Of a stretch of 64,000 nucleotides of DNA, positions 5,860-40,524 are shown piece after piece. The notes below the pieces were generated by a model that saw only the letters and a program-made list of their open reading frames with translations, was not told the origin of the DNA and made no database searches. The DNA comes from Podarcis filfolensis (taxonomy: Eukaryota). The stretch lies in NCBI GenBank assembly GCA_964270895.1, contig OZ185435.1. The stretch is one strand, 5' to 3'. The translations under genes and the position numbers were made by a program. Each line of letters opens with the position of its first letter. Position 1 is the first letter of the stretch.

Positions 5860-5879
5860 ATGTCTGACAACGAAGAAGT
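5860..5879 (+). CDS. TNNT3: TNNT3 exon 2 coding part (MSDNEEV); exon begins at 5848
   Basis: catctag|AAACCTGCCAAC ATG TCT GAC AAC GAA GAA GT|gtaagt. Confidence 0.93.
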
Positions 5880-7552: not shown

Positions 7553-7566
7553 GGAGCAAGTAGAGG
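7553..7566 (+). CDS. TNNT3: TNNT3 exon 3, 14 nt (EQVE)
   Basis: T-rich tract + aacag|G GAG CAA GTA GAG G|gtgagt; phase 2 to phase 1. Confidence 0.9.
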
Positions 7567-10292: not shown

Positions 10293-10310
10293 AGGAATAC
10301 GAAGAAGAAG
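10293..10310 (+). CDS. TNNT3: TNNT3 exon 4, 18-nt cassette (EEYEEE)
   Basis: pyrimidine tract + tgcag|AG GAA TAC GAA GAA GAA G|gtaacc. Confidence 0.9.
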
Positions 10311-12425
10311 GTAACCAAAACCTGGAATGTGCCTTCTCTCTCCTGGATGATCCCTTGATCTTCAGCTCTTTAGCTGCCTGTCATTCACCCATCTCTTTGT
10401 TATTGTCTGCTAAAGATGATCTGAAATGCTAGGTGAATGACCAGCCCAGTGACTTTAGAATTAAAACTGGAGGCCATTTCACAAGGCCAAAGGGGAGATC
10501 TTGACAGCCACCAGATTAAATGCATATTACACAGCTAGCCTTTAACCCAAGCAATTATATGATTGCTCAGTTGTGCATCTTGCTGAATTCCCTTTCTGGC
10601 CCTCATAATTAGATTTGAATTTGTGGTGGCAGAAACTCCCATTATAATATTTAAGTTCCCAAACAAACTGTCATCAGCACAATAAGTTAAATGTGCAGGT
10701 TGATAATATAAAATTGGGAAATGTACATCATCTTTAGCTGACTACAGGTTTGACAAGTTACAGTAGTGTATATTGATACAGGCACGTTTTGAAGATGGAG
10801 TGAAGAAGATTCCCTTTCACACAGTTCCATTAGTGCTGAACTTATTGTTTGTACTGCAGACTCTTGGCAGTGACGGGGTCTTCAGAAAAGCTTACAGGAT
10901 CAAAGTGTTGAGTGAGACCACACATTATCTAGGTACTTGGATGTGGAAGTGCTAATACGTTTTTCTAGTGCAAGAGTCTTCTTTGTTTTGCTGTACTCCA
11001 TATCAGGATACCCCTCAAATATTTTGAAACAGGCTACTTAGGACTCAGCTACATTGGCAAAGAAAAAGCACTTTATATGCGTTGCATATGCCTTTTAACA
11101 CTGTGACACCAGATGGTGCTGTTCCATTTTTGCCAACCCGATTTCTCACAAAGTTTACAACGCATTTAACTGAAATGCTTCTTTGATGTGTTTAGATCCA
11201 GCCTTACAATCCCTTGCCATTTGATGATAAAACTTTGCTCTCAGGTTATAAAGGGAGAGAGAGAAACCAGCCTGGAAGAATATTGATTTTGTGGTTGTTG
11301 TTCAGTGATATATAAAGGATTTGTTTTATTTTAAAGCATTTCTAAACTGCTTAATATTTAAACATAAAAAGAGTAGAGTGATTGAATAAAGCAGGAATCT
11401 AGTAATACCAAGGACCAGTTGTATAGATCAGGGAAACCGTGGGCAAGCAGAGATGCCTTTACAATATGGATTTCTTCTCCCACCAGGAAACAGAGGCCTG
11501 TCCCATGGGGTTGGGTTGTGTGTGTTAGACCTTCTGGGCTAGCCTGCTCTCCCATGTACCGCAGTCATTTCCTTCCTATATGCATGTGATACTGTGGATA
11601 GCCTGGTTCAGTTGTTAACACTTTTAGTTGTACCAGAAGAGAATGCTGGGATTGGAGCAGGAATGCCATGGTGTTAAAAATGCAGGGCAGTGTAGCCCTT
11701 GAGGCTCTGGATATACTAACATGTCTAGTGTTGGGGGGGGGGAGACTATGGAAGACTGGAAGACTATGAGCAACCGACTCCAACACAGAAACTCCATAAA
11801 ATCACAATGGGAGGCTTAAGGCTAAATGTATTATTCTTAGCTCCTGAGTACGATGCTGCTGAGGAGAAGTTCATTTCCTTATTGAAACAACAGCTTTTAA
11901 GCCAGTACCCTAATTGAAAAGCAAAGAAAAAAAACAGTGCTTTCCTTAGGGTTATTGTGAATGAAGGTCCTTTTCAAACTCCATCTTCAGCCACTTGTCA
12001 AACCTAACAAAGAAATAGTCAAGGGTGCTAACCTAATACAGGCAGCTTCTTCTGGGAAAAATGAATTTCCTTTTCTTCTTTCCTTCCTCCTTCTTTTCCT
12101 ATGTTCCTTCCTTTCTGTTGGACAGGGGGAAACCCCACATTGATTTCAGTGTGTGATTGCTACGCTTGGTGTTTCTCTTCTCTTTAAACAGCATGCTCCC
12201 CTCTCTCCTGAATTATGTTTTTCTGGTTTCTGAATTGACCATCTTTGTTTGATCTGTAACTGTCTTCTTCTGTTTGCTTCCTGTTTTGTACATTCTCTTT
12301 TTTTTCTAACCACTTATTTCTCCAGCAGTAGTTCACAAAAATAGTTTTTAAAGGGTTTGGGCCACTATCTTAATGTTATTATTTTGTTTGTCTTTGCCTC
12401 TTGTTCCCATGATGTCTCCTATCAG

Positions 12426-12443
12426 AGGAAGCACAAGAAGAAG
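12426..12443 (+). CDS. TNNT3: TNNT3 exon 5-like copy A, 18-nt cassette (EEAQEE)
   Basis: cctatcag|AG GAA GCA CAA GAA GAA G|gtatgt. Confidence 0.85.
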
Positions 12444-13175: not shown

Positions 13176-13193
13176 AAGAAGCTCAGGAAGAAG
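13176..13193 (+). CDS. TNNT3: TNNT3 exon 5-like copy B, 18-nt cassette (EEAQEE)
   Basis: long pyrimidine tract + cctccag|AA GAA GCT CAG GAA GAA G|gtacgt. Confidence 0.85.
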
Positions 13194-15249
13194 GTACGTG
13201 TTGAGGCATCTCGGTTCTGACCATTTAAATAGAAGTTGGAGCACTGCATTTCTTAAGGCTGTGGAAGAGAAGGTGTAATTATAGTACTGTCCTTGCTAAT
13301 TGAATGCAAAAGGGCACTGACTATAGGCACTGACTATATCTAAATAGACCCTTCGAAAAATGTACAGCCACTGACACGCCCTAAGCCATCTGTGCATGGT
13401 GCTTGATTTTCTATTGACTTCAGCTGAATTACCTATGGCATAAGAGACTGGGTAGTTGGAATGAATGGGATATTATGTAGGTGGCTCAGACTTCCGTTCC
13501 ACAGCCCTGCCTTGGAGCAAGCAACTATATCCTTTGGTGTGTGTTGCTGCTAATTCCAATATAATGGCTTCTCTCCTACCCTCACAGAGAAATTAAGGCA
13601 GAAGAATACAATTGGGAAAACATTGCATTGGAATTCAAAATCCACATCTGCTTTTCTTTCTAGCACAACAGCTTCCATATGTGCTTATGGGGTGAAAATA
13701 TGTAGTCAAAATCAACTCTTAAAAGTTGGTATTATTTATTAGTATTAATAAGGCAAGATTTAGGATTAGCTGCTTGATGAAAGCCCACATGAGCCTTCAG
13801 CAAAATGCAGCCCAAACATTGAACTCATAAATATGAACTCATACAGATGACCAAATTAGCCTGGCATGAGATTAGTTGCCTGGCATAGCTTCCTTCCTTC
13901 AATGAAGGAAGACTTTACCACAATTCTGTGCAGATATGAGGGGGGAAATGTGGTGAAATTGACAAACGTTCTACCCTAATCTACAGAACTCCCTGTTGAA
14001 TTTGCCCTGCTGTGTTGCTTAATATCATCCTATACTTGTGTAAGATTCGTTCTGTCTGCTTGAGTACATATACGCCTTTAATTCAGCTCCAAAGCTTTAG
14101 TTTGGCTCTTTAAAGAAAAGTAAGGAACGGTTATACTGCTTTTAATGCCCTCTTGAGACTTGATGTCTGCAGCCATGATTCAATTCAGGATTTAGTGGAA
14201 TAGAGAGTAAATTTGTTTCCGCGCTCCTGCTTCTTCCTGAATTGACAATGCATTGCACTGGCCTCAGGCTGATCCACCCATTACCCAGAAGTCTGTGCTG
14301 CAGTCCCATGCCGAAGAATTCATACAATAGACAAGCATGGCAAGATGTGAATGCATATTCCCAACATGTGCCTGCCTGCTGACAACAGCAGCACTGGCAC
14401 TAGCTTGCCTCACATAGTTCCACAACAGGTTTTTGAGCACCGGTTCTTCATGGCCTTCTTCGTCCTGCCCTGTTTAAATGGCTGAAAGGGTCAGAAGCAA
14501 CCTAAACTTTGTGCTGTTTTGGCCCTGTAAGCATATTCAGGGCTTAACCACATGTGGTGCTAACAATGTGATTAGGAATAAAATTGAGAAACCGCATTGC
14601 CTCCTAGTACTTGCTATTAGTGAATGAAACCAGTGCGTCTACTATCTGCTGGCGAGGCTCAAGGGAGAAATATGCACATGACATCTTCTCTGTTTCTGGC
14701 TGGGAGCTGCAGCATGCAAGCCAAACCATAGGTAGTGTTTCTAGAATAGGCAGGTAGCTTTCCTTGTTGGGGATACAAAGGAGCCGACTGGAAATCCAGT
14801 TGTGCCTATTTTGCTTGCCATATTGATGTCACTACAGTCCTCCATGCCATCTGCAAGGACAAAGTATGTGGTGACAGAGAATGGCACAGGCCGAGGCACA
14901 CTTTGATTGTGGGGCTGGGTGGTCTCTGTGAGTTTGTTCCTGAAGTATGTAGATGTGCCCCAGAAGGAAAGGAACAGTTTCATAAACAAAGTGATTCTTG
15001 GCTTACAATTCATTTGCAGTCTGAACTCTTTACATTTCCTATTCCGCATTTGCATGAGCTGCATTTGTCTATGTGCATTTCACCATCCCTGTCTTAACTG
15101 CATTAATTTGCTTTCCTATAATGAGCTGACTTACTTATCAACACTGTCTTGAATTACTTTAAGCCTCTTGTAATCGTGCTGTCCTTTTTCTAATATTCTT
15201 GTTTTCTATTGCCTCAATCTTGTTCCATGATACTTCCCACCTGGTGAAG

Positions 15250-15261
15250 TTCATGAACCAG
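15250..15261 (+). CDS. TNNT3: TNNT3 exon 7-like microexon copy 1, 12 nt (VHEP)
   Basis: ggtgaag|TT CAT GAA CCA G|gtatgt; first AG after an AG-free pyrimidine-rich stretch 15164-15247. Confidence 0.75.
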
Positions 15262-15493
15262 GTATGTGACTTGACTTCTGAATTCTTCTCTTTCCATCTC
15301 ATATCAGTGTGTGCAAGAATTTGAAAGTGATGGAAGAGAACAGGAGAGCAACACATTACCTTAATATCTATGTTGGTTTCCCTGGAGACAATCTCTCTTT
15401 CCCTCTATCTCATTTTCATTAACAAATGGTGATATTTATTGTGCAGTGAAACCTTGTCATATAGGACAGACACTCAACATATATGATCTAGAG

Positions 15494-15746
15494 CAGGGGT
15501 CAGCAACCTTTTTCAGCAGGGGGCTGGTCCACTGTCCCTCAGACCTTGTGGGGGGCTGGACTATATTTTTGGGGTGGGGGGAATGAACAAATTCCTATAC
15601 TCTGCAAATAACCCAGAGATGCATTTTAAATAAAAGGACACATTCAACTCATGTAGAAACACGCTGATTCCTGGGCTGTCCACGCGCCGGATTTAGAAGG
15701 TGATTGGGCCGGATCCGGCCCCCAGGCCTTAGTTTGCCTACCCATG
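15494..15746. mobile_element. hAT-type MITE
   Basis: CAGGGGTCAGCAA...TTTGCCTACCCATG ends; flanked by degenerate 8-bp duplication ATCTAGAG/ATCAAGGG. Confidence 0.7.
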
Positions 15747-15754
15747 ATCAAGGG

Positions 15755-15892
15755 CAGTGGTTCTCAACCTGTGGGTCCCCAGATGTTGTTGGACTACAAC
15801 TCCCATCATCCCTGAGCTCTGGCCTTGCTACCTAAAGGTGATGGGAGTTGTAGTTCAACAACATCTGGAGACCCACAGGTTGAGAAAGGCTG
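15755..15892. mobile_element. Palindromic hAT-type MITE
   Basis: CAGTGGTTCTCAACCTGTGGGTCCCCAGATGTTGTTGGACTACAACTCCCATCA with inverted counterpart; flanks ATCAAGGG/ATCTAGGG. Confidence 0.8.
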
Positions 15893-17185
15893 ATCTAGGG
15901 TTTATCCATTCACTGCAGTGCTCTTGTGGATATAAGCCAACTGAGACTCTGCTAAGAACACGGTGAAGCACAGGATTACTAGCTGCACAACACTTTAGAC
16001 ATTCCCAGGGAAATACCTTTATATAGTATTTGGTTAGTGTACCCATCTCTATGATCCAAGCATTCCCCTAATTGCTAGCCTTCCTTCATATTTTTATAGG
16101 ACTACCTTTTGCCTTTCCCTACACATGTTCCAAAAGACTGGGAAAATTAAAATGCCCTCTTTAGTCTACTTTCTTTTCATTCCCTGGATAAGCTGTAGCA
16201 TATAAGTTTGCTCACACTGTCCACCAGTAGCTGATGGACTTTGGTGGAACCCTTCATAGACAACTAGAAGCAGGTCTGAGGTCATTGGGGGGGCAAGTGG
16301 GGAGGCGGGAGGCTGAGAGAATCATCACAGGAGCTGCTGAAGCCCCTTCAAAGTACAAAGGGGCAGGCTATCTTGTCCTCTTCTCCTGCAAATTTGCCCA
16401 GCACTTCCACATGCTTGCCTCTCTAAAAAAAGGTGAGAACTTATGTAAAGTCCAGTCCAGACGACACAAGTAATTCATCGCTGACATCCTTAAAAAAAAC
16501 GGTATAGTTTATCTGATTCTTAAGGGCTTCGGTTTTCTGAAGCACTTGGCAAAATAAAATAAAATAATTGCTCTTCCACAGATGAAGTTCACAACAGACA
16601 TGAATCCTTGTGCGTTATGAATAGTGCATTTGTGTTTTTTTTTTAATAATTGGAAAACCATGTCATGTTTATTAAATTGTGAGCCTGCAGGCAGGGATCT
16701 GCTTGTTTTTATAACTGTACAATGGCTAGTATAGTATAGGCATTTTTATAAATATTAAATAGTTGTGTTGTTTTTACACCTAACAATAGCAGGTGTACTA
16801 TGGTTAGATTCACATATGCACACAGACGCACAGACACAACAGCCATGGTCCATATCAGAAGGATATATAGCTTTTAGGAAGTGCTGCTTCCTATGCTACT
16901 TTTCTGAAATGGAGAAATACGATCCATGCTCAGAAAAGCAACATGTGAAGTGATCCTCAATTCCATGTATGCAGACAATATGTGCATATTTCATATTCCA
17001 CATGTGCAAATCACCATAGGGTGATATCCAACTAAGCCATGTTCAGAGCAGACCCATTAAAAACAATGGCTTAAGTGCATTGATTTCATTCGGTCTGTTC
17101 TGAGTAGCTGGCTATCATCCCTACGTACTTAAGAAAAGTACAAATAGATTCCAAGGGTTTCTATTCACATTTGTAAATCAACTTA

Positions 17186-17284
17186 GGCTGCAATCCTATA
17201 CCTACCTACCTACCTACCTGGGAGTAAGCTCAATTGAACTCAATGGGGCTTACTTCTGAGTAAGCATGTACAGGACTGCACTGT
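17186..17284. mobile_element. Short palindromic MITE-like element
   Basis: GGCTGCAATCCTATAC...GGGAGTAAGCTCAATTGAACTCAATGGGGCTTACTTCTGAGTAAGCATGTACAGGACTGCA; related decayed copies near 7395, 17024, 23005, 26860 and 37330. Confidence 0.55.
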
Positions 17285-17528
17285 TTAATATTATACAAGA
17301 GACCCCATGTTAATTTGCCTGTCTCTCCACCTCTTTTCCTTCTTTTCCCATTCATGTTTGTCTCCTTTTTTATTTTAAACAGGTCATTAATTTGTGTTCC
17401 CCTTTAATCCCCTTTAATCAATTACTTATTTCAACCTTGACTTGCAAGAGTCAAAGGTTGCAGTCACCCTGTATTTATTACTTGTCTTGTCTTCCTTTTT
17501 CTCTAATGGCACGCCCCACCTCACGAAG

Positions 17529-17540
17529 TCCATGAACCAG
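17529..17540 (+). CDS. TNNT3: TNNT3 exon 7-like microexon copy 2, 12 nt (VHEP)
   Basis: cacgaag|TC CAT GAA CCA G|gtatgt; AG-free stretch 17464-17526. Confidence 0.75.
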
Positions 17541-19000
17541 GTATGTGACATGACTTCTGAATTCCACTGATTATCTGAAAGGGTGATGTGTACAGGAATT
17601 CAAAGGTGGAGCAAGGAAACAGGAGATAACAGTTTCAATAACTCTTAACACTTGCTTGATTTTAATTTCTTTTCCTGCAACCTTCTTGATCAAAAATAAT
17701 GCATTTTCCCATCCTTCACTTGTAAGTATCTGGGAGAAAGAAAACATTTGCAGGCGCTTGAAATAGAAAAGGCAGAAAAGACATAGGGTTTTCTTAAATG
17801 GGCAGCTAGTGGGGGCAGAATCAGGGAAGATCTGAGTCCTCTTCATGCATTATGATGAGCACAGGTAGAGGGGGGAGCAGGATCCCACCCACTGTCTTTC
17901 CTTCAATACAACACACAACTAACTTAAGTCCCACGGATTTAATCTAAGTCTGGATCCAACCTATTGGCCATTTCACAAGTCATGCTGAAAGTGCTCCTCC
18001 CTCAACACGTTTTCATTGTAACGGGTGAAGAGAGCTAGAGACTAGAGTTCCTTTTAAATGGCTTCAGTTTATTAAACTGTAATGACTTTGTGTAGACAAA
18101 AGCTACTATGGATAAGCTGCTGTATTCATGAGTGAATATTCTTTGTAAAAGGGCATGGTCGCAAAGATCCATTTTTTGGTTTTGGAATTCTGCATGTATA
18201 GCTTTGTTCTCCCCAGAGATGCAGATGGAATCAGAGTTGGTTTCCATCTTTGGGAGTGGAATGGAAGCCACTGATGTGCAAAGAACCTAACCACATGACA
18301 GATCAAATTTATTCTTGTAACAAGAATAGATTTAAATCGAACCTTTGCTAGATAACCATGGAACTTCCTTGCTTTCTTGCACGTCTAGGTACTAAAATGT
18401 TACAATGAAGATCATAGCTACCCTGAAATTGACTGCAGCTTTTTCTTACTATTCAAAATATGAAAGCTTACCATGGTGCAAATTGCCATGAACAAAGTAT
18501 GCAGATGTAAATTTCGGACCATACATGTGGTTCTAAAATGGGCTGATGAGACTATCTACCCAGAAACAGAAATAAGTGTGCTCATTTCTGGTTTTGTGGA
18601 GATGGTCCCATGCAAGCTCTTTAGAACTGCTGCACTCCAGATGAATGGGATGATACTTGCATTTCTTCTGGATCAGCCAAGAAAACATTTTTGTAAAGCA
18701 TAATGGTGAACTCCTCTTGGCCCGGGCTATGCTGACAAGTGAATGACAAAACGTGTGGCATTTTTCTATGTGCCTTTTTATCTGGTATTTGCCATTCACC
18801 TTCATTGATTCCCCAGTGGGCTGCTTTCATGTGATTTTTTCAATGTTATTAATTTTCTTTCCCTCAACTCCCCTCCCCCTCCCCCACCCCTCTTGAAGCT
18901 CATAGAAGCACCCAAAGACCTTGTAATAACATGTTCCTCTTGTTTCCGTTCTCTCGCTGTCCGTTACATCTTGTTCCATGACACTTCTCCCCTGATGAAG

Positions 19001-19012
19001 TTCATGAGCCAG
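19001..19012 (+). CDS. TNNT3: TNNT3 exon 7-like microexon copy 3, 12 nt (VHEP)
   Basis: gatgaag|TT CAT GAG CCA G|gtatgc; AG-free stretch 18918-18998. Confidence 0.75.
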
Positions 19013-19395
19013 GTATGCGACACGACTTCCACATTCGTATGTTGATTCTGATATGTTCACAGAATGTACATAATGTCTTTGAATGGGATGTTGGAAGAGA
19101 AGAAACAAGATAAAAAAGATTAACAAACTGTCACTTACAGACTAGTGGGTTGTTTTTTGAATGCTCCACACTTATACCAGCAATAACCTAGTTTTTCCCT
19201 CCCTCCCCACATTCCTACAGCTTCCCTCAGTGTCTCTTCTGCACTAGATGTTTATATTTAACCAGTATTCTTCTATTCCCTTTTACCCATTCCTTGATCA
19301 CCTGATGAAGCTCAAGAGTGCTTACATGCATATTCTTTCTTCCTTTATTCTCTCCTTCCCATCACTGCTTGCTTCCACTTTGACACCTCCGGCAG

Positions 19396-19407
19396 AAGTC
19401 CAAGAAG
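19396..19407 (+). CDS. TNNT3: TNNT3 exon 8-like microexon, 12 nt (EVQE)
   Basis: long pyrimidine tract + ccggcag|AA GTC CAA GAA G|gtatgt; mammalian exon 8 encodes EEVQE. Confidence 0.8.
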
Positions 19408-21289
19408 GTATGTGCTTTCCACTTAAGGAACTGTTTGTCTTCCTTTTCTCCTCTAGGGCGGTGCAGAATAGCGTTTGAAGCTTTGCAGCGCATTCTGATG
19501 CATGTTTACTTGGAAGTAAGGGTGCTGTCAGACGGTTGCTATTTTTTGGTGGGATTCAGTCAAATTCAGGCTGCAAAACTGTAGTTGATTGGAAGGTCTT
19601 GCGCAATGAACACGCTTCTCCAAAAGATCAGATTTATGGTTATAAGCAAAGGGACGGGACAATGCACTGAGAAGTGTGGGATGACACTTGCTTTAACGTA
19701 AGGTCATCTCATCTGCCTGGCAACAAATTCTACGGGAATGATGGTTAAATAGCCAGCATTGTCTAATCTCCCTGCAAACCGATCAGGGTGAAAATGTTCA
19801 ATAAACATACAGTATTGCCTGGAAGTCTACTTCATCACACTGTTTTCAGTGGCCCTTACTCCTAGGGAAAGTGTGCATAGGATTGCAACCTTAGGTTTCA
19901 TGAATAGAATATCATTTATTACGGCCATAGGCCCATACAGGTAAAAACAACACATACATAACAGCTTGTGCCGTAAGGAGAAAAAAAAGCAATCGCTAAA
20001 ACACCACTATAACAATAAAATACTATAAAATGGAAAGGCATACTATAAAATGGAAAGGCATACTTTCCATGTAGTGAGGAAGGATGGGCATAGGATTCCT
20101 TGCATAGGAGTTTTCTTTGCAGATTTTCACAGAAGGTTCCAGATATGCACACGCACTTTCAATTCAATCTACCTCACAGGTTTGTTGCGAATATAAAACC
20201 TAGATTGCCTTGAACAGCCTTTGAGGAAAGGTGGGATGTACATGGAATTGAATACAAAATGGAAAGTTTCCATTAGTAAATCTTTACAATATGAAAAGGG
20301 GCCTTAGATGTTCAAACTGAAGAGTGCCACCCTAGTTTTTTGAAAGAGATTTTCACCTGCTGTACCTTAATACTAGAGGATATTATGCTTCTGAAAGGCA
20401 TCCTTACTTTCAGAGGGTTAATATTAATGCATTATGGGATGGTGAAGTTTTAGAAGGCCAGAAGGATCATGAAGAAAGGCAAGAGGGTTTACTAGTGGCT
20501 GTTGAAGTTTCCACTAACTCATGCATTTGTTGGATGACATTAGTCATCAGGGCTGGTCATAGACTGAATTCTGCCCCAGCCAAAGAGTGGCCTTGGCCTC
20601 CCCCTTCTGTTTGTTCAGCTTTTGATCACCTTACTTAAGATATCATTTGCAGCAGTGCTTTTTTAAAAAAAATGTTTAGCATACCGCTAAACATTTTGTG
20701 AATCTAAGTTTGGCCTCATTGAGGGGCAGTATTTCAGTATGAGTAGGAAATGAGAGTACCCATAAACATTTTTTTTTAGAAAAAGGAGCACTGATTTGCA
20801 GCCTATTTAGCTTTAATGCACAGTTTGCATATAGGATCTCTATCTTTGGCATATAAGTTGACAAATTCAAACATTAGGATCTGTAAATATGAACTGTATA
20901 TATATTTTCTTTCAGCTACTGAGCACATGGTTTGTTTACTTAATGCATTTCTACCCCATCTTACAGGCTGCAGTACCCTTGCAGGAAAACATTGGAGCGC
21001 ATACAACACCAAAACCACAATAATACTATGAAATACATTTTCAAAAATCAGTAAAAGTTAAAAATTTCCCCAAACAGCAAATTAGCCAGCCACAGACCTC
21101 TTGTTACTTTGTATGATTGCCACTCACATCCATTTCTGGAAGTTATATATTCAACAAAATGTAAGGATGACGATGTTGATAACAACAACAACAACAACAA
21201 CTATTATTATTATTATTATTTATATGCCACCCATCTGACTGGGTTGCATATCTGAAAGACTGTCTCCTGCCCTACAGACCCTCTTGGAC

Positions 21290-21452: not shown

Positions 21453-21840
21453 ACGATGGAGATGTCATCATCATCATCATCATCATCATCATTATAAAAC
21501 AAGCTGTTCCCTGCTACAAGGACCTTACAGTCTACACAGTAAACATGGCATTTGTCCACCCAAGAAGCCAACAGGACTGCTTGGGTGGAGAAAAATATGT
21601 CTTGTATGTATGACCTGGCCCTCAGAAATTGACATTTTTTGACAGTCCCTATCGCCTATTTCAGTCATAGGACACAATGTATTGCTCTTCTTTCTTTCAA
21701 CTGCACAGGAAGAACAAGTGGTTTTTAGAAACTGGAAAGTAGAGAGGGGAGAGACAAATAAGGGTGTTGTGAAAAATAGGAGGAGGAAAATTGGAGCATG
21801 TTGACCCAGTTCCTTTCTTTCCTTTGCCTTTCATCTGCAG

Positions 21841-21867
21841 CTGGAGCCGAAGGAGAATATTGTGATG
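21841..21867 (+). CDS. TNNT3: Candidate TNNT3 cassette exon, 27 nt (AGAEGEYCD), at the position of the mammalian fetal exon
   Basis: tcctttctttcctttgcctttcatctgcag|CT GGA GCC GAA GGA GAA TAT TGT GAT G|gtattt; phase 1-1, frame-preserving, acidic; donor only moderate. Confidence 0.5.
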
Positions 21868-24682: not shown

Positions 24683-24707
24683 AGAAGAAGCCCAGAGTTG
24701 TACCACC
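24683..24707 (+). CDS. TNNT3: TNNT3 exon 9, 25 nt (EKKPRVVP-P)
   Basis: ctatttag|AG AAG AAG CCC AGA GTT GTA CCA CC|gtaagt; phase 1 to phase 2, fits exon 10. Confidence 0.88.
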
Positions 24708-26334: not shown

Positions 26335-26380
26335 GCTGACTGCTCCTAAAATCCCAGAGGGGGAGAAAGTAGACTTTGAT
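26335..26380 (+). CDS. TNNT3: TNNT3 exon 10 (LTAPKIPEGEKVDFD)
   Basis: ccaaag|G CTG ACT GCT...TTT GAT|gtaagt, 46 nt. Confidence 0.97.
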
Positions 26381-26572
26381 GTAAGTATTGTTGGCTCCTT
26401 TCAACACTATTGACTCCTGTAAATTTTCATTATATTTTAGACAAGAGGGTTAAAAACAGGACCTTCACCTCAATCCTAAAAACATATTCCTAATCCTGAG
26501 AGGAAATTGAGTGTTTGGGGTTTTAATTAATGAGGATGTGGAAGGATTCTTTGAGTGGGAAAACCCAAATAA

Positions 26573-26875
<303 letters not shown>

Positions 26876-27480
26876 TGAGAGTAGAACCATTGAAATTAAT
26901 TAACATTACTTATTTAAGTCTATTGATTTCAGTGAGGCTAGCCTTGAGTATAACCCAATGAACCATCCCTACTCTGTAACACAAAGGAGTGAATTTTTAA
27001 GAACTAACACTTTTTAATCTAAGTATAATTGCACCTTTTTGTTTAGGCGGAAGGGATACCATCCAAATGAGCTTCTAATAACATTATTGTTATTTTGAGT
27101 GAGGGAGAATTTGATCCTTATGCTATTTTCTCATCTGAAAAAAAAACCACATGACATAAAATCCACAATCCAAATGGGCATTGTAGTCTCTACTGTCGTC
27201 TGCAGCAGAGGTACTGCTTTATCCTTTGATCGGCTTAAATGCAAGTGTTTTAGAAGACATACAACTATTTTACCACACCCCTGTGGCTAATGCAGACCCT
27301 AGGTGGAGGGACCTCCTCTAGGGATATTTTGGCTATCTGTATGGGATCACTGTTGAACCAATTTGGACTGCTTCACTCTGAGGGAAGTTTCTTCTGTCAA
27401 ATGTTGTTCCAGCCAACAGTACATAAAGAGTCACAATGAAAGATCTAATTGCTTCCTCTTCTTTTGCATGAAATGAACAG

Positions 27481-27558
27481 GAGAAACGTAGAGCGGAAAG
27501 GGCTGAACAGCAAAGAATCCGGGCTGAAAAGGAAAAGGAGCGTCAGGCCAGGCTTGCT
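27481..27558 (+). CDS. TNNT3: TNNT3 exon 12 (EKRRAERAEQQRIRAEKEKERQARLA)
   Basis: gaacag|GAG...GCT|gtgagt, 78 nt. Confidence 0.98.
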
Positions 27559-27917
27559 GTGAGTTGTGGTTGTTATTGTTATTGTTGCTTATTGAATCCT
27601 ATACCCGGAGGTCTCAAGGTGGTTGACAGAATAAAATCAAGATATAAAACCACAAAACACACAATCAAAATAACAACCCAATAACCCCCTCCCCCCAAAA
27701 AACCCCACATTTTAAAAGGGCATAGAGAGACAGAGCAATCAAGCGACTTCTTCTGGCAGAGTTATTCTAATACTTTTTGCTCCATTCTGCAGTCTACTGC
27801 TGCTGGTCTCCTTTTGGCTCCATCCCACAATCTACCATGGCCATTCCCCAAACTCCTTGTTCTGCACTTATGATCCCCAAGTATGATGTTGGCTATTTTC
27901 CTCTTGTCCCTTTGTAG

Positions 27918-28100
<183 letters not shown>

Positions 28101-28549
28101 TGAAAAATCCTCTGGTTAAGTGTTCCCTGTATCTCATGGGTGGGTCTCATCAGCTGCTAGGAATTCTCTAACCACACACTGGCAAGAGCTCTGAAAAGCT
28201 CTTCTGCTTTCAAGGGAAGCCAAGGGAGCTTCAGGATCCGTGCAGAGACACTTGGACTTTGGTTTTCTCCTGTACAAATGCCAGCAACTTAGTTTTGCTT
28301 GACATCAGCCCCGCTGGGTCCTAAGGCCTTGGCATGGGCCCCAGCACTTGCCCCACAGTGCCAGGGGCTGATACTGGGCCTGCAGCCAATAGTCAAGACC
28401 AAAGAGCAAACCAGAACTGGAGGTCAAACCAGGAGGCAGGATCAAGAATCAATCCAGGAGTTAGTCACGAGCAAAGGACAGAGCTGGGGGCAGAACTGGG
28501 CAATAAAGACACAGGAATTCCTACCTACATGCATCCTGTGATATACTGA

Positions 28550-28687
<138 letters not shown>

Positions 28688-29131
28688 TAAAATGGAGTTG
28701 TACGAAATGGAAGGAGTCAAGTGTATTTATCATTCATTCATTCATTCAGTTTTGATCCTGTCCTTCCTTGCAAAAGAGCTCAGCAAACAACCAAGGACTA
28801 AAACAATTCAATTAAATTCAGTTAATATAAAATAAATATTGAAATACATTATGAACATCTAGAAACAGTCACATGCCTGCACAGTCCATAATTGCAAGGT
28901 TGTCAAAAGGAAAAGGAACGCTTTTAAATTCCTCCTGAATGCTAATAATGTTCATACACCTACCAGGGAGGGCATTTTAAGCTTCCGGATTATGGCGAGA
29001 TCTCCCATGGTGGGGGCAGCCCTGCCGTCAGAACCCAGAAAAGCAAGGGGGCGACCAGGGTTGGTGGCACCTTACCCTTTGGCCATGGGTTCCAAAATGG
29101 GACTGGCCACCCCGACTGTACACTCCTATTG

Positions 29132-29513
29132 AAGGTAAAGGCAGGTAAAGGACCCCAGACAGTTAAGTCCAGTCAAAGGCAACTATGGGGTGCGGCTTTC
29201 ATCTCACTTCAGGCCAAGGGAGCTGGCGTTTATCCACAGACAGCTTTCCGGGTCATGTGGCCAGCATGACTAAACCACTTTTGGTACAACAGAACACTGT
29301 GACGGAAGCCAGAGCACATGGAAATGCCATTTACCTTCCTGCCACAGTGGTACATATTTATCTACTTGTACTGGTGTGCTTTGAATTGCTAGGTTGGCAG
29401 GAGCTGGGACAGAGCAACAGGAGCTCACCCTGTCACACGGATTCAAACCACGACCTTCTGATCGGCAAGCCAAAGAGGCTCAGTAGTTTAGACCATAGCG
29501 CCACCCACGCCCT
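29132..29513 (-). mobile_element. Sauria SINE (near full length)
   Basis: Same diagnostic blocks as 23613 plus the 5' head (...GGATTCAAACCACGACC...TAGCGCCACCCACGCCC). Confidence 0.85.
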
Positions 29514-29883
29514 ATTATATTCCTATTGATATAAGCACCCTTTAATAACCCATGCTTGTAGTATTGCTCAAGCATATCATTGTTGTCCTAGTTTTGTTCT
29601 TTTAGTTTATGTGAACTACTACAGGTTAATAAAATCTCAAAAGTGCCATATTTGTATAAACAAGATGGCCCTTTACCTTTGCCAACCTGGTGCCCTCTAG
29701 ATGTTTTGGATTACAACTCCCAACAGCACCAGCTAGCGTGGTGCATAAAACTTTGCCTTATGGCTACTAGTTCTTTGGGATCTGTGTAATCTCACTGTAT
29801 ACAAGTTGTACAAGTGACAATAAAGTATTTCATATTTTATATCTACGGAAGATGTGCTATGGGAACTTCAACTGTTATCCCCT

Positions 29884-29977
<94 letters not shown>

Positions 29978-29984
29978 TTCACAG

Positions 29985-30075
29985 GGAAAAAGCCAAGGAG
30001 ATGTGGGACTGGTTATATCAGCTGGAAACGGAGAAGTATGAGTATTTAGAGAAGATCAAGAGACAGAAATATGAT
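29985..30075 (+). CDS. TNNT3: TNNT3 exon 15 ([30 protein letters not shown])
   Basis: tcacag|G GAA...GAT|gtgagt, 91 nt. Confidence 0.97.
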
Positions 30076-31165
30076 GTGAGTAGAAAATGAGATCTTGGTT
30101 ATTATTCTGCTTACGTCCAATGCCTAAGTGGAAAAGGGTTGCAATTCTCCTGGGAGAAGCGTAGTGTGTGGACCTTAAAATACCACTCTGAATGCTTATC
30201 AATGGGATTTACATTTCATTTGACTCTGAAACTATTCGTCCAGAGTGGGTTTTGGTTTTCTAGCAGGAGAAGAGAACTTATGCCTTCATGATTTGCCTGG
30301 AAGAAGAGCATGAAAAGCATTTTTAGCCCTATCCATGAATTTACCTGTCTCCATCATAAAGTGCCTTGAAGAGTAGAATGACTAATTTCATTGCTTTATT
30401 TTCCATCACAGAAACCAAGAGAGGTACCCTATAATCTCTATAGGTCTTGTCAGCACTTTTCAGCACTGGATTGAAATATCGAGGGGTATTCTAATGCTGA
30501 ACTCTGTTCTGATGTCACCTGCTTCTTTCACCCATAGATCATGTCACCTCCCTCACTTGTACTCATGTAGACAGAGAAACCAGCAACATGTCTTCTTTTG
30601 TGTTCCTAACCCTACATGACACCTGCCGTATTTTTTATTTTGAAAAAACAAACCCGTGTGTGTGTGTGAATGATCACATTGGATGGGAACGTGGAAATAT
30701 TCCAAATTTCTCTACAAACTGTGAGCATAGCCCCTGCTTTCCTGCCATGTGATAAAAGAGAAACCACTCTGTATTTGTGCAAAATCTAGTGTGCAAAAAG
30801 CTAGGCCTATGCACGCTGTACAGGTGGTACCCTCCTTATATATGTACGTGAGCTGAAGCCTAGAGAGGACAACTAGTTGTGCTGGGGGAGGACGGAACTT
30901 GACCGATGTGCAAAATCTGCCCCATCGTGCTTGGACTCTGTTCTTTGATAAGAATAGGGTATCTGTTGATGGACTCCCTGTTTAAGCATTTGCCTTGTGC
31001 TAGAATGTTAATGCGATCCTTTGCATTTTGCTTACAAGACACGATATAAAGCAGAGATTTTTAATGTGTTGCTCGGGACTATTTACCTCTTTCTGAGTAC
31101 ATACTGCAAACATCTGGATTTGAGAAGTACCCCAAAGCCAATATAATTATCTCAATCTCTCTTAG

Positions 31166-31206
31166 ATTTTATCACTACGTTGCAGGGTGGAGGCACTGTC
31201 TAAGTT
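31166..31206 (+). CDS. TNNT3: TNNT3 mutually exclusive exon 16 (alpha): ILSLRCRVEALSKF
   Basis: ctcttag|ATT TTA TCA CTA CGT TGC AGG GTG GAG GCA CTG TCT AAG TT|gtaagt, 41 nt. Confidence 0.92.
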
Positions 31207-33976
31207 GTAAGTACAAAGAGTTTGCCCACATGGCAAAAGCAGCAAAAAAAAAAAAAGGCTGTTTTGCGTGCATGAGCCTCCTGCATGCCCAGAGTCCGGG
31301 TGCTCCAGGTTCACGCAGGACAAGAGGCTGGCACTCAGTTCCTGGCACAGAGAGCAAGAAGCTGAACAGGTTAAGCAGATGAATACAGGTGCAGGGTCAC
31401 ACATTGCAGAATATAGTGGTTGTGCCTCTGGATTAAGGCATCTTGTAGGTTAACTGGATGATGGCAGCAAAACAGGGGGACTGGGAATGAAGGATCGGCA
31501 GAGAATTCTTGAATCCGGTGGTTATCTCAGGCTTCATAGAACGCAACCACAGAAATAGGATGTCAGCCTCTTTCAATAGAATTATTTCTATAGGATCTGA
31601 GCTGCAGTCCTCAGATTAATCCATGGGGTGTATTCCATGGGGAGACCGGTGAGAAGCAGTGGCTGGTTAGGGAGATTCTTATAAGTTTGCCCATGTCCTA
31701 CAGAGAATCCAGAACTGTGACTGTGTGCAGAGCCAGAGAGACAAGTTTAATGCGGGGTGGCCATCCTCGCCTTGCTCTGCTTGGGAGCTTCCCAGTGGCA
31801 TCTCTCTGGCTCCTGATGGGAACAGCATGTTGGATAGGGTGGAGCTTGATCTTGATCCAGCAAGCTAGTTCTTACGACATTTTAATGCTTGAATTAGAAA
31901 TAGAAAAGGGACAATTGTTTTCAACACAGGAACTAGGTAGGGGGCAGGGGCAGGTAGGCGAGTCTATAATGGAAGGGAAATAAGCAAGGCAGCAGGACAA
32001 AATTCATACAAAAGAAAAGACAAAATTAGCATAAAAGTAAGGAAGAATGGAAAGAAAGCATTCTTGTTAGAGCAACAGCAAGCCAAGTTGCTGTTCAGTG
32101 CTTGCCGATTCTGTTCTTCCCAGGAGACTGAGTGCCATGCCTGCTGTCTTCAGCTTACTGCAGGTTTAGCATTGAAGGTAAGTCCTAAACCCTGAGGCTA
32201 GGCTGATGAGCAAAATGAAGTTGGTTCCTTAACAAATACCTGGTTTAAGAGGGCAATCCAAGAGCCATTAGGGAGTTCCACAAGGCAGATTTTGCCTGCA
32301 AAGTAAGTATATCCGGTGGCCAAGTTTTTCCTTTTCATGTTGTTCCATTGCTTCTGATGTTAGAGTCTCTTTGCTTCTGCTTGCCATGGAAATCCAAGAT
32401 GGTGGACAACAAAATCCAAAATGGTGGACAAGGATGAAACGTGAACTCTTGCATTGGTTTAAAGTGTGTTTCAAAGGACAATAAATAATATTGCTGGGTG
32501 ACCTATTCAAGGACTCCTGAGAATAATATAAATACGGCTAATGAAGAATTTTAACTATGCTGAATTTGCCAGGGTCTAATAGGACAATTGTCTTGTTTTC
32601 TCACCTTATTTCTTAGGGGCTGAGGAACCTATGCCACATGGCGACCAGAGTAACTGGAATTATAGGAAAGGCTCATTAACCAAGCACACAATTAATTATA
32701 ATTTTCTCCCCCTGACTTCTGTCACAACTCAAAACATAGCACCCTCCAATAAAAAATGAGACAACCACAGAAATTATCAGAGCCTGGGAGCTGATTTCAA
32801 ATGTCTGTGGTTGATGCCTATTTCTGATATTTCCTTCCTTTACCCTTTGGGAGCTCTTACTTTGGCTAACAATGTGGCGCATAGCATCAAGTGGATTACT
32901 TGATGACAAGTGGTGCATCTGGTTTGGATGCACAGGACTCAGATTTATGTGTGTACATTTCTGTGGGACAGCCTCACATGTGGCAGAGGAGCATAATAGC
33001 CTTTTTCTGTGCATTGGCTTCTTTCCATGTTGTAGCACAGTAATGTTTGTAGCCAATCATATGTTCCATGATATGTCCCAGCCATTGCCTTTCTTACCAT
33101 GTGGAAGCAGTTGTGCTGCTGCTGTGGTAACATGAAGGGGATGTCACAGTCTTGGTAATGTAGCAGGTGGCTCCCTACAATTGACATTGGCAGTTTTTAT
33201 CATTTCATTTATGCATAGGAAAACTTCCATTGCCATAAGCTTATGGGAGCACCTTAGTTTCTCCTCCCTCCTTTTAAAGGTTCTTTTGAGTCCTGTAGGG
33301 TGGAGGCTGATGTGGGCTTTGTGCTTCCAATGTGGCAGCTCACAGGAGAAGCGTCAGAGTTAAGCTGAGCAAACTGAACTGGTTAAACTTCCAGCTTTGG
33401 AGTCTGTCCATTTCCAGCTCCTCTTCAACACAGGTCATTCTCTGTGTTCCAAATCAATGTTTGTTAACTGGCTGGTAAATCTCCAGCAATGTTTATGGGC
33501 TGGGGAAGAGGCTGCAACTGAGCTGTGAAGATGGGCAGGGGAAAAGGGGATGACATAACGCATACATAGACAGCTCACTTCAGGAACAGCATCATAATGA
33601 CTGTATTAAAATAAAAGCTTTCAAACTCTCCAGAGTTCCCAAGAAAGGTCATTTTTGATCTTCCTGTTCTTATTTTCTTGCCATGATTTGACTAGCCATA
33701 ATGTAACCAGGTTCCTTGAAATAAACCTGGATAAACACTTTAACAGCATTTCTTGCTCACTGGGGTGCCGTTATAAACATTTAACAACTTTTCTGGTAAG
33801 TTTACTGCCAGTTAGCCATGTCTTTGTCTCTCAGCTTTTCATCCCAAAGGGAAGACTTTAGGATCCCACCCTATCTACATGCAGCAGCCCTGCTGCCAGG
33901 TAACAACCACCCACCTTCCCTCCACTATGGGAAGCGAGATCACTTTTAAAAACCTCGTCACGTATGTTGTTTGCAG

Positions 33977-34017
33977 ATCACCACCCTCAGGAACCGGATT
34001 GATCAGGCCCAGAAGCA
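33977..34017 (+). CDS. TNNT3: TNNT3 mutually exclusive exon 17 (beta): ITTLRNRIDQAQKH
   Basis: ttgcag|ATC ACC ACC CTC AGG AAC CGG ATT GAT CAG GCC CAG AAG CA|gtgagt, 41 nt. Confidence 0.96.
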
Positions 34018-35169
34018 GTGAGTAACCTCCTTGTCTCCCTCTCCCAGCCCAAAGTACAGAAAAATCCGCTCTCAACGCTTGTCAGCGGTCACTTCAGTCT
34101 TGCTGCCCTTCTTTTCTGCTGCGAGGGGGATTGGGGAGAGGGGGAGAAGCAGGAATGACAACTTCCACCCCTCTCCCTTCCCTAGGGTAAAGATTGGCGA
34201 AACTGAAGTGAATCTTACCATGCGAAAGAACCCACCCCTTTTCCCGCAATCTCAGCAAAGCTCACCTGGGGCTGTGCTGCAGTTCCTTTGTGCTTTCTGA
34301 TATTGTAAGGAACAGGATGTAATAACACTAATCTCATCCACGTTTGCCGGTACCACATGGACACCATGGGCCACCAATGGGTTCTTTTGAGCTGGTCACT
34401 TGACCCTTTAAAAATTCCCCTTCCTCCTACCTAATTCAAATCCCTTCCTGCTTGTTTTGTTCCGTGTCTTCTTTGTTGCATGTGTCCACTAAGAAACCGA
34501 ATGCATCAGAGATGAAGGCCACTGGGAGGGGAAGTTGTCAAAGATTGGGAATGGGTAGTTGGGGGAAGAGAGGAAGAAAGGAGCAACTCTGTGCTTGCTT
34601 GTTCTTTGTACATAAATCTATATTGGAACACAGGATGAAGATAGGAAGCGGCCTTACATAGATTCAGGCCATTGGTCCATTAAGCTCAGTATACACTGAG
34701 GAAAGGAAAATAGCCAAAACGGCATGTCTCCTTATGCAGAATGGAATTAAGTACAGATTTTTGTTTGTCTGAAGTCAATTTGTGTCATTCCAAATGATAA
34801 AAAAAACAAGTATTAAGTGCTGGTGCCACATGCCTCATGCTGAAGCATCTCATATTAATGAATAAACAATGTCAATTTCAGACAAGGTAATGAAAGTATC
34901 AGCAGCATATTCCATTTGAGCGGACTTGTGGTCCAGATTTCAAAGATGAATTGAACTTTAAAATAATTTGCTTTGGAAGGTGTGGCATTCTAAAGTAAGA
35001 AGTGGCTCTTTATTGTTAAATCAGAACACTTTTTTTAAAAAAATAAAAGGAATATTTGAAAACTCTGAAGCAAAGTGCTCAGGGCTTCATGCTGTATTTC
35101 AGTACAAATTGGGACCCAGTGATAACAATGGCAACAGAACTGCCATTGAGATGGATCCAGAAGTTCTTG

Positions 35170-35400
35170 AGCTGGTCTGAAGCTTTTGCAAAGCAGCACT
35201 CCTAACAAGACCTGCTGCAACAATGCAGTGCCATCATCCTCATAAGCCATGTTTGCTATATGGGCAGTGCAGGTGGAGATGTCAGCGATAGGATGCCAGT
35301 CTCTATTGTCTGAGAAAGCACTTGGCAGCCCCTTGTCTCTCATGTATAAGGTTTAATTTCAGAATAGAGTGTCCACCTGCATTAACTGACAGGTAAAGTA
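35170..35400 (-). mobile_element. Highly decayed non-LTR reverse transcriptase fragment
   Basis: Minus-strand HERQGAAKCFL (compare GVRQG..LF) followed, frameshifted, by NMAYEDDGTALL (compare LAYADD..LL). Confidence 0.35.
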
Positions 35401-36658
35401 TGCACTCTGTCTTCTCTGTGTGTATATGCATGTATGTCACTGTGGCAGATCCTCCCATAGGTGAACCTACTGCTGAACAAATCCACTGGTCTTGGTAGCA
35501 GCCATGTAAGCATTCAAAAGATACTCCTTGTTGCTGTTGCATCTGAATACCTTCCATGGATGAGTCAGTACGGGAGTTTTCCTAAGGAACCTTTATTCCA
35601 GGCAGTCCCAGGCTGCTAATCCAGGATAGTTTGCTGGGCAACTTGCAGTACCATCCAGCTATAGTGTGCAAACTGCCTAGTAATTTCAGGAAGGAGCCTT
35701 ATCGGGATGTGCATGGGGAGGTCAGGAGTAAGCAATGAACAAGCATTGCAAGAGGGATCTGCTGTTGCCACAGTGCGGAGACTCTAACACTAGACTAACT
35801 CACTCACCTGGAACTAGACCTAGCTCATGGCAGAAAGGTAAGTGCTGCGCATGTTTTGGGTGCTGTTTTATCTGCTTGCAAAATAAAGGAATTTGGAAAT
35901 CATTTGAACCACCACAGGAGAACTCCGGGACTATCTCCTTGTTTCCTGGATCCTGGGGGGGAGGGGGCGGGGCGTGGAGAGAGAATAGGTGAATAGTTCC
36001 AGTAAAGATTAAAGGCATTTGTGCAATTCTGAAGAAAAAGTATTTTTGTGAACAGCCATGGTTCATCAAATAAGTAGTAAGCATGATGCACCGTTTCAAT
36101 CCATTTCTGCACATTGTTATCATTAATGGTTTAAGTCAAGAATGGGTAACTTCTGCATTCCCGGGGACCACTTTTTTTGCGACACAGTGGTCCAGGAGCT
36201 GGAAGTGTATTTTACTGTCAGCATTGCCCTTTCATAAGTCCCCTGGCTACATAATAAACCTGGCACTACCTAGCTAAAAGGTCTTTACAGCTGTGGGCTA
36301 CATGTGCTTAGCAATGTATGAAATCCAGAGAGGTGTAATGCAATTTTCATTTCTGGAAAATCTGAAACTGGGGGCCTGTTGTCACTTTTTTTTTACCACA
36401 TGGGGTGAGGTAAATTTGCTTCTGAGGCCAGCTCATACCCATAGATGGTCAGCTGGCCACTCCTTGTTTCAATGATAAAACGTAACAACCTGGAACTGTG
36501 TTTCATGCACTTTAATGCTGATGCACCCAGTTAAAGTGACATCGGATCTGGCCTGTTCTGGTGACGAGAAATGTTGAGTGACTCACCCACCGAAGGGTTG
36601 GTAAAGGATGTGTCTGGGACTGGCGCGCTGACGTGTTTTTCTCGTATCTTTATTACAG

Positions 36659-36707
36659 CAGCAAGAAGGCCGGAGCCAAGGGCAAAGTTGGAGGGCGCTG
36701 GAAGTAA
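36659..36707 (+). CDS. TNNT3: TNNT3 terminal exon coding part (SKKAGAKGKVGGRWK*)
   Basis: ttacag|C AGC AAG AAG GCC GGA GCC AAG GGC AAA GTT GGA GGG CGC TGG AAG TAA. Confidence 0.98.
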
Positions 36708-40450: not shown

Positions 40451-40463
40451 GACCCGCAATAAA

Positions 40464-40524
40464 TCCTGCACTGCAGGGGGTTGGACTAGATGACCCTCGG
40501 TCCCTTCCAACTCTACAGTTCTAG
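40464..40524 (+). mobile_element. CR1 3' terminus in MRPL23 intron 1
   Basis: CTGCAGGGGGTTGGACTAGATGACCCTCGGTCCCTTCCAACTCTACAGTTCTA. Confidence 0.75.

Follow-up and report, generated by a model that had tools for sequence, protein, structure and literature searches.

Three 12-nucleotide VHEP microexons in the fast troponin T gene of Podarcis and their probable origin before the squamate/turtle-bird split

Introduction

The amino-terminal tail of troponin T (TnT) tunes conformation, tropomyosin affinity, Ca2+ sensitivity, and acidosis tolerance. Here we analyze the variable 5' region of the fast skeletal gene, TNNT3, in a 64,000-nucleotide (nt) stretch of DNA from the lizard Podarcis filfolensis (GenBank assembly GCA_964270895.1, contig OZ185435.1, one strand; the whole stretch is called the window below), and in particular three 12-nt microexons, c1, c2, and c3, each of which encodes the tetrapeptide VHEP. 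One related system is the avian Tx segment, which has as many as seven P exons coding for AHH(A/E)E pentapeptides, occurs in Galliformes and Craciformes only, is spliced in post-hatching in pectoral muscle, and has had its metal binding measured (PMC11016001, PMC7581897). A preliminary description of the window had interpreted the VHEP exons as a possible triplication of the lizard lineage that reached a similar histidine (His) spacing independently of birds. The comparison reported here leads elsewhere: the three exons are very probably cassette microexons of a single duplicated unit family, with a triplication of c1-c2-c3 that took place before squamates separated from turtles and birds.

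That non-avian TnT might sense metal or pH through His is an idea already published, and a 2023 review describes Zn-type motifs in reptile fast TnT isoforms and gives putative Zn sites of the HEXXXE/HEEVHE type, HEPAPEVHVPEEVHED in rabbit and HEEVHE in human (PMC11016001). Exons 4-8 of mammalian TNNT3, notably the one of VHEP type, are the second related system; like the Podarcis array they follow exon 3, precede the (E)K(K)PR exon, and encode acidic, His-rich peptides. The mammalian 5' microexons share their phase class with the trio (PMC2447309).

Identification of the Locus and of the VHEP Microexons

The window contains the gene for fast skeletal troponin T (TNNT3) of Podarcis on its + strand. 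The conserved core exons were located at 26335..36704 by tblastn with bird TNNT3 proteins as queries, and the core matched the Pfam family Troponin (PF00992). In-silico splicing of the window reproduced Podarcis RefSeq isoforms, which therefore identify the locus. Joining 5860-5879, 7553-7566, 10293-10310, 12426-12443, two VHEP exons, 24683-24707, 26335-26380, and the exons that follow yielded the initial 100 residues of P. muralis X35; with intronic starts at 19305 and 21798, those of P. raffonei X1 and X13, respectively, were obtained. The core exons and the matching splices thus support the earlier assignment of the trio to the 5' variable region of a lizard TNNT3. The small exons of this region follow one another in the order EEYEEE, (EE)AQEE a, (EE)AQEE b, VHEP c1, c2, c3, EVQE, AGAEGEYCD, and (E)KKPRVVP, and the array follows the constitutive 5' exons and precedes the (E)K(K)PR...LTAPK exon.

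The microexons c1 (TTCATGAACCAG, 15250..15261), c2 (TCCATGAACCAG, 17529..17540), and c3 (TTCATGAGCCAG, 19001..19012) are all located on the + strand and were recognized by their splice signals and their orthologs. Pattern search and frame reading confirmed the preliminary description with respect to position, length, phase, and coded peptide. The pattern AG-TYCATGARCCAG-GTATG had exactly three matches in the window, all on the + strand (15248-15266, 17527-17545, and 18999-19017); the chance expectation estimated from shuffles was 0.10, and three copies were reached in 0 of 100 shuffles. The G carried over from the preceding exon and the 12 nt read V-H-E-P, and the final G opens the next codon (phase 1-1). 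Differences of 1-2 nt make the three exons distinguishable at the nucleotide level. When up to three mismatches were allowed, no further VHEP-exon copies were found in the window. Two weak look-alikes, at 16575 and 19298, were rejected as extra copies; neither has a donor.

The splice signals were also measured as claimed before. All acceptors are AG and all donors begin with GT (GTATGT in c1 and c2, GTATGC in c3), and the acceptors are preceded by AG-free stretches of 84 (c1), 63 (c2), and 81 nt (c3) with a pyrimidine content of 70-73%. The first 24 intron bases are identical at 23/24 positions between c1 and c2 and at 19/24 between c2 and c3, as reported. The statement that the likeness of the copies is limited to splice-proximal sequence was only partly right: the likeness extends beyond 24 nt, namely over -149..+97 around the exon for c1/c2, -33..+90 for c1/c3, and -23..+50 for c2/c3.

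The build of the VHEP units is not peculiar to them. The upstream motif of c1 and c3 recurs at the AQEE exon (12432-12443), and most small array exons of the other species belong to units in which a pyrimidine-rich element that terminates in ...CACCTNNTGAAG precedes the exon and a donor flank GTATGTGAC(A/T)TGACTTCTGAATTC comes after it. In the common unit, a pyrimidine/antisense element lies upstream of a GAAG acceptor, which is followed by a phase 1-1 exon of 12-18 nt and by the donor flank. Because this build is shared among the small exons, the VHEP trio belongs to a larger family of microexons that arose by tandem duplication. A single unit family of this kind probably gave rise to the AQEE, VHEP, and EVQE/EEVHEE exons and may have produced the avian AH-type exons as well. 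Each microexon of the array has a G as its last base and is read with a G carried over from the exon before it, and any combination of them stays in frame, as seen in the spliced models, which translate correctly; since every exon is symmetric, any subset could be spliced in.

Orthologous Trios in Squamates, Turtle, and Crane

To place the trio in time, we compared the TNNT3 loci of Sceloporus undulatus, Eublepharis macularius (gecko), Hemicordylus capensis, Malaclemys terrapin (turtle), Grus japonensis (crane), and Suricata suricatta (meerkat). Every sauropsid locus examined carries three 12-nt exons of VHEP type in the same order and at similar spacing, and the trio is located in each of them between an AQEE/VHEE-type exon and an EVQE/EEVHEE-type exon. 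In Sceloporus, c1 (VHVP) is found at 14830, c2 (VHEP) at 16763, and c3 (VHEP) at 18433; in Hemicordylus, all three encode VHEP (13893, 16218, and 18529), as they do in Malaclemys (10693, 11670, and 14694). Eublepharis has VHEP at 12897 and 15832 and APEP as c3 at 17158, while Grus has (E)VHEP at 22458, APPP as c2 at 25069, and VHEP at 26291. The all-VHEP genomic state is therefore common to Podarcis, Hemicordylus, and Malaclemys. The copy count in other squamate loci, which the preliminary description had proposed to determine, was three in Sceloporus, Hemicordylus, and Eublepharis alike. The flanks of the trio are specific to each paralog and common across species.

Maximum likelihood trees of the units (region -70..+110), calculated with 15 and with 35 units, clustered the copies by position and not by species, and this clustering was equalled in 0 of 200 label shuffles. 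Support in the 15-unit tree was 100/99 for c3, 96/95 for c2 including the turtle, and 100/100 for squamate c1. In the 35-unit tree, c3 including turtle and crane VHEP was supported by 99/98 and c2 including turtle and crane APPP by 92/87, while the EVQE/EEVHEE exon (100/98) and the AQEE-b/VHEE exon (94/88) formed separate clades. As copies group by position across species, the triplication appears to be older than the split between squamates and turtles plus birds, and the array would be ancestral in sauropsids. The usual dating of this split is about 280 million years ago. Some of the tree evidence speaks against so early an origin. Turtle c1 joined squamate c1 with a weak support of 58/2 in the 15-unit tree, and its placement leans mainly on synteny and flank similarity; furthermore, the crane exons upstream of the trio had no resolved placement in the 35-unit tree.

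A triplication within the lizard lineage, starting from a single amniote VHEP exon and running parallel to and independent of Tx, is extremely improbable in the light of these data. The identical tetrapeptide encoded by the three Podarcis copies would fit such an event, as would the single xxEP-type exon in mammalian proteins and in the one mammalian locus examined. The copies have, however, one-to-one orthologs with paralog-specific flanks in Gekkota, Cordylidae, Iguania, turtle, and crane, and the trees group them by position. In addition, birds themselves carry and express the trio: the crane locus contains it, and protein models of birds show it as VHEP-APPP-VHEP. Neither the duplication specific to lizards nor its independence from birds, as proposed in the preliminary description, can thus be maintained.

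The preliminary description had also weighed its proposal against a triplication ancestral in amniotes, and the data come close to the latter, as the array seems to be ancestral in sauropsids, while the mammalian evidence consists of proteins and one gapped locus. One xxEP-type exon was seen in the mammalian proteins and in the locus examined, as compared to three in sauropsids. The meerkat locus contained one (E)VHEP exon, identical in sequence to Podarcis c2 and with a similar donor flank, GTATGTGCCATGACTTC, but an assembly-gap run of N (4905-5004) lies 150 nt downstream of it, so that a mammalian count of one is provisional. The earlier count of one such exon in mammals agrees with the proteins and the meerkat locus; it does not cover the further His microexons (VHEE/VHE units) of mammals. 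In the frog proteins examined, the xxEP unit was not found.

The exons on both sides of the trio vary among species. The AQEE-b exon (13176-13193) corresponds by orthology to VQEE in Hemicordylus and, in gecko and turtle, to a His exon of VHEE type. Given this orthology to a His-coding exon, the His of AQEE-b appears to have been lost in lacertids and iguanians. On the other side, the orthologs of EVQE read EEVHEE in Sceloporus and Hemicordylus, ETHEE in the gecko, EVHEE in the turtle, and EEAPEE in the crane.

A fourth, species-specific copy of the c1 unit was observed in Sceloporus undulatus at 12353-12376. It has kept AG-TTCATGAACCAG, but its donor has changed from GT to CT, and in the tree it is the sister of Sceloporus c1 (100/93). 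This extra copy is a decayed pseudo-microexon and illustrates the state of a copy that is not under selection.

Relation to the Avian Tx Segment

The trio resembles Tx in that His/Glu-rich microexons are located in the same variable region of TNNT3 and that metal binding has been proposed for both. It differs in its repeat, a tetrapeptide VHEP with one His and one proline (Pro) in three copies, compared with four to seven AHH(A/E)E or H(E/A)EAH pentapeptides in Tx, and in its distribution, as it occurs in squamates, turtle, alligator, and many bird orders. The VHEP trio is also far older than Tx and coexists with His-rich exons of birds.

In Grus japonensis, extra microexons encoding AHEP, EPQEE, and AHEE were observed at 19559-21085, upstream of the trio. 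Their flank architecture is the same as that of the VHEP units, and in this one crane locus they look like a non-galliform counterpart of the Tx-type expansion. The shared architecture of the AH-type exons, which makes the His-rich exons of birds seem paralogs of the VHEP units, is a further argument against an independent origin in lizards, although it is suggestive only, given the tree placement mentioned above. As far as can be judged from sequence, this suggests that the His-rich expansion of birds drew on the VHEP microexon family. Since birds carry the trio beside their His-rich exons, the lizard trio would be a conserved ancestral neighbor of the bird expansion and no independent route to the HxxxH spacing.

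Conservation Around the Exons and Variation of the Coded Peptide

The intron sequence around each VHEP exon is conserved over an island of about 200-400 nt. In blastn comparisons of the window (+ strand) with Malaclemys, the c1 island (15059..15451) matched 10505-10891 with 70% identity over 405 nt, the c2 island (17306..17746) matched 11443-11886 with 66% over 460 nt (75% against Hemicordylus), and an island covering both c3 and the EVQE microexon (18837..19430) matched 14528-15126 with 66.5% over 633 nt. Among five species, identity to Podarcis was 0.8-0.93 at -80..+120 and 0.15-0.5 beyond about ±250 nt, and the mean column identity of the c1 unit (-70..+110) amounted to 85%. A purine-rich block at 15325-15365 (GGTGATGGAAGAGAACAGGAGAGCAACACATTACCTTAA) was noticed about 70-110 nt downstream of c1, with a c2 equivalent at 17595-17640; from Podarcis to gecko the block past c1 hardly varies, and much of it is retained in the turtle. 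This block can pair with the region of the 5' splice site, but the resulting fold is not significant.

The acceptor AG, the donor GT, the length of 12 nt, the open phase, and the flanking island are kept for all three copies in every sauropsid locus examined. The coded residues vary by lineage, from VHEP to VHVP, VHES, VPEP, APEP, and APPP, while splice sites, length, and phase are constant. Because the residues drift and the splice signals and the length stay, selection seems to act on the exon as a unit of splicing and of length/charge rather than on any fixed geometry for chelating metal. The suggestion made earlier, that selection acts on splice-proximal sequence and regulated inclusion, is supported by the conserved islands, by the peak of identity at the exons, and by the decay of the unselected Sceloporus copy.

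These data also bear on a functional proposal that is compatible with the ancient origin, namely that the VHEP repeats serve chiefly as a transition-metal (Zn/Cu/Ni) cluster, Tx-like in function. We consider this unlikely. If all three copies were included, His would be placed at i, i+4, and i+8, and models of Sceloporus and Gopherus contain four to five His spaced 4 to 6 residues apart. Repeats rich in His and Pro, such as those of histidine-proline-rich glycoprotein, need no helix to bind Zn. Zn sites were moreover proposed for rabbit and human fast TnT, with motifs in reptiles (PMC11016001). However, the His is not kept in c3 of gecko and Pogona (APEP), c2 of birds (APPP), or c2 of alligator (VPEP), and other residues drift as well (VHVP in Sceloporus c1, VHES in Gopherus c2) while splice signals and length are invariant. 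Each VHEP unit furthermore offers a single His, whereas AHH(A/E)E, the pentapeptide of Tx, offers two, and a Pro at every fourth residue rules out the helix that was invoked for HxxxH sites. Metal binding by (VHEP)n as such is possible, with low probability.

Inclusion of the VHEP Exons in Annotated Isoforms

To follow the use of the exons, 443 TNNT3 proteins were fetched by a phmmer search with a core exon and subsequent word-index searches and cluster listings. Evidence for co-inclusion comes here from RefSeq and other gene models and rests on the evidence used by their annotators. Lacertid RefSeq isoforms contain 0, 1, or 2 VHEP units, and inclusion is thus variable; the models concerned are P. 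muralis X35, Lacerta agilis X24, X30, and X42, and Zootoca X9, which also has the EVQE exon. VHEPVHEP was present in 38 proteins among the matches listed, including those of P. muralis, Lacerta agilis, Zootoca, snakes, and turtles.

Three tandem tetrapeptides of VHEP type were found in 34 of the 443 fetched proteins, all of them gene models. They comprise 24 bird proteins with VHEPAPPPVHEP, five Gopherus proteins with VHEPVHESVHEP, Sceloporus X1, X6, and X7 with VHVPVHEPVHEP, Alligator sinensis X6 with VHEPVPEPVHEP, and one Pogona protein with VHVPVHEPAPEP. The bird arrangement ...VHEP-APPP-VHEP... was seen in duck, goose, owl, crow, and manakin. The corresponding trios are VHVP-VHEP-VHEP in Sceloporus, VHEP-VHES-VHEP in Gopherus, and VHEP-VPEP-VHEP in Alligator, whereas the lacertid models listed include at most two of the three exons. 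As far as these models go, co-inclusion is thus annotated for two copies in lacertids and for all three orthologs in other sauropsids.

Several of these observations weigh against the use of all three copies in Podarcis. The string VHEPVHEPVHEP was found in none of the 443 fetched proteins, where the two clusters containing lacertids had entered with the 15 of 53 and 15 of 72 members listed. Joint inclusion of all three copies was likewise not seen in the lacertid models listed, in which VHEPVHEP was the maximum. Even the longest models of Hemicordylus (X1) and Malaclemys (X1) have one VHEP despite three VHEP copies in the genome.

One may therefore ask whether only one or two of the Podarcis copies are functional, the rest being a conserved-looking but unspliced pseudo-exon or a decoy that regulates its neighbors. 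The low counts of VHEP in the models of lacertids, Hemicordylus, and Malaclemys are what would be seen in this case, and the hairpins described below would occlude c1 and c3 and not c2. Still, we regard it as quite improbable. All three copies have retained AG, GT, length, open phase, and island in every sauropsid locus examined, whereas the one truly decayed copy, that of Sceloporus, lost its donor; and the three orthologs are co-included, with distinguishable peptides, in models of Sceloporus, Gopherus, Alligator, and birds. What the locus contains are three intact, ancient, and separately conserved cassette exons that are variably included in annotated isoforms, and we infer that all three are used in Podarcis.

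Predicted RNA Hairpins at c1 and c3

Inclusion of single exons can be gated by RNA structure, as in the stem-loops that occlude splice sites of tau exon 10 and SMN2 exon 7, and hairpins bound by MBNL are located near fetal exons of TNNT2 and TNNT3. In Podarcis, a hairpin is predicted at c1 (15217..15263, + strand), formed by an antisense element upstream that pairs with the exon over its entire length as well as with the acceptor AG and the donor GU. An equivalent hairpin, likewise with an upstream antisense element and enclosing the exon, is predicted at c3 (18968..19014, + strand). The minimum free energy of the c1 hairpin was -16.4 kcal/mol (z -3.0) in Podarcis and -17.0 kcal/mol (z -2.75) in Hemicordylus; for the c3 hairpin the values were -13.6 kcal/mol (z -2.3) in Podarcis, -14.3 kcal/mol (z -1.8) in both Hemicordylus and Malaclemys, and -16.6 kcal/mol (z -3.6) in Grus. 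Over 17 distinct units, 85% of the cells could pair, compared to 25-41% for slid partners. A 12-nt "shadow" block was observed to correspond to the loop and the 3' arm of the predicted exon hairpin. A long donor-side hairpin between the 5' splice site of c1 and a downstream purine-rich U1-like element, obtained with RNAalifold, had single-sequence z values of -1.3, -0.4, and -0.4 and was not adopted.

The likeness to tau exon 10, SMN2 exon 7, and the MBNL cases consists in a local hairpin predicted to bury acceptor, exon, and donor of c1 and c3. The differences are that the c1/c3 hairpin lacks strong covariation and that c2 has no hairpin. There are indeed several reasons to doubt the structure. 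An equivalent hairpin was not predicted for c2 or the meerkat exon and was weak for turtle c1. Covariation was almost nil, with three pairs changed on both sides, and the number of cells changed on both sides was matched by 30 of 500 shuffles. Moreover, the exon together with its preceding G forms a 10-nt palindrome, GTTCATGAAC, and the hairpin may be a by-product of a near-palindromic exon and of sequence conservation. Because covariation is weak and the exon itself nearly palindromic, gating of c1 and c3 inclusion by an exon-enclosing hairpin is put forward here as a hypothesis.

Proposed Mechanism and Significance

Under the favored explanation, an ancient triplication within one unit family, each copy would since have retained its splice sites, its length, and its phase within an intronic island specific to that paralog. 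Distant branch points, with long AG-free zones, are a feature of regulated exons, and the long AG-exclusion zones upstream of the VHEP acceptors may indicate such branch points here. Regulation might proceed through the conserved intronic elements and, in c1 and c3, through the antisense hairpin over acceptor, exon, and donor. Each inclusion would lengthen TnT's acidic N-terminal tail by four residues, among them one Glu, one titratable His, and one Pro, and the His of the unit is expected to titrate near muscle pH. From established work on TnT, an added unit could shift its conformation, tropomyosin affinity, Ca2+ sensitivity, and acidosis tolerance, and the physiological role of the VHEP units may be sought there. 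A more specific proposal is that lineages with the all-VHEP state (lacertids, cordylids, and emydid turtles) produce a muscle- or stage-specific (VHEP)3 isoform that responds to pH or Zn and is gated by the c1/c3 hairpins; this must be called improbable.

The parallel between lizards and Tx does not hold as a lizard-specific one, and the finding that remains is useful but modest. The variable region of sauropsid fast TnT contains a three-microexon array that was kept copy by copy, each copy with its own intronic islands, and the trio provides a clean natural case of selection on the splicing architecture of microexons. It also offers a homology frame for the His-rich exons of birds and suggests that 12-nt exons may be controlled by RNA hairpins. 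If both the (VHEP)3 isoform and the hairpin gating were true, the array would be an RNA-structure-controlled microexon switch about 280 million years old, and the source of the avian Tx exons that were amplified later.

Other Exons and Neighboring Features of the Window

The remaining TNNT3 exons are all located on the + strand. In-silico splicing, which reproduces P. muralis X35, placed the start codon exon (MSDNEE-V) at 5860..5879, exon 3 (VEQVE) at 7553..7566, the 18-nt microexon EEYEEE at 10293..10310, and the exon (E)KKPRVVP, the first one past the variable array, at 24683..24707. The microexon (EE)AQEE a lies at 12426..12443, with an alternative acceptor that leads to 12432-12443 and the upstream motif in common with c1 and c3; (EE)AQEE b lies at 13176..13193 and was assigned by its VQEE/VHEE-type orthologs and their clade. 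The microexon EVQE (19396..19407) belongs to a clade of its own, as described above, and is found in the proteins Zootoca X9 and Lacerta X30, while the fetal-type exon AGAEGEYCD (21841..21867) is coded in the P. raffonei X13 model. The first part of the core, located by tblastn like the rest, comprises the exons 26335-26380, 26639-26755, 27481-27558, 27918-28031, 28574-28687, and 29983-30078; the last part consists of the alternative exons 31166-31204 and 33974-34015, followed by 36660-36704.

The P. raffonei RefSeq models X1 and X13 start at intronic ATGs upstream of the EVQE and the fetal-type exon (19305-19407 and 21798-21867, respectively). These starts look like artefacts of intron retention or alternative starts rather than real N-termini. 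Directly upstream of the core exon 29983-30078, a long simple repeat of CTT/TCT type was noticed at 29814-30090, which appears in open reading frame (ORF) listings as poly-Leu/Ser/Phe. An ORF of 179 amino acids on the - strand (41261-41800) had no Pfam match at E 0.01; from the impression of its sequence, we take it to resemble the C-terminal part of a retrotransposon ORF2.

MRPL23 is probably located downstream of TNNT3 in the window. The region 39700-40540 is G+C-rich and has Ala/Gly/Arg-rich ORFs on both strands, and an exon in 42435-42755 gave a weak match to Ribosomal_L23 (21 bits, below the Pfam cutoff of 30.8 bits); together they are probably the promoter region and the gene of MRPL23. 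MRPL23 adjoins TNNT3 in the crane and meerkat loci as well.

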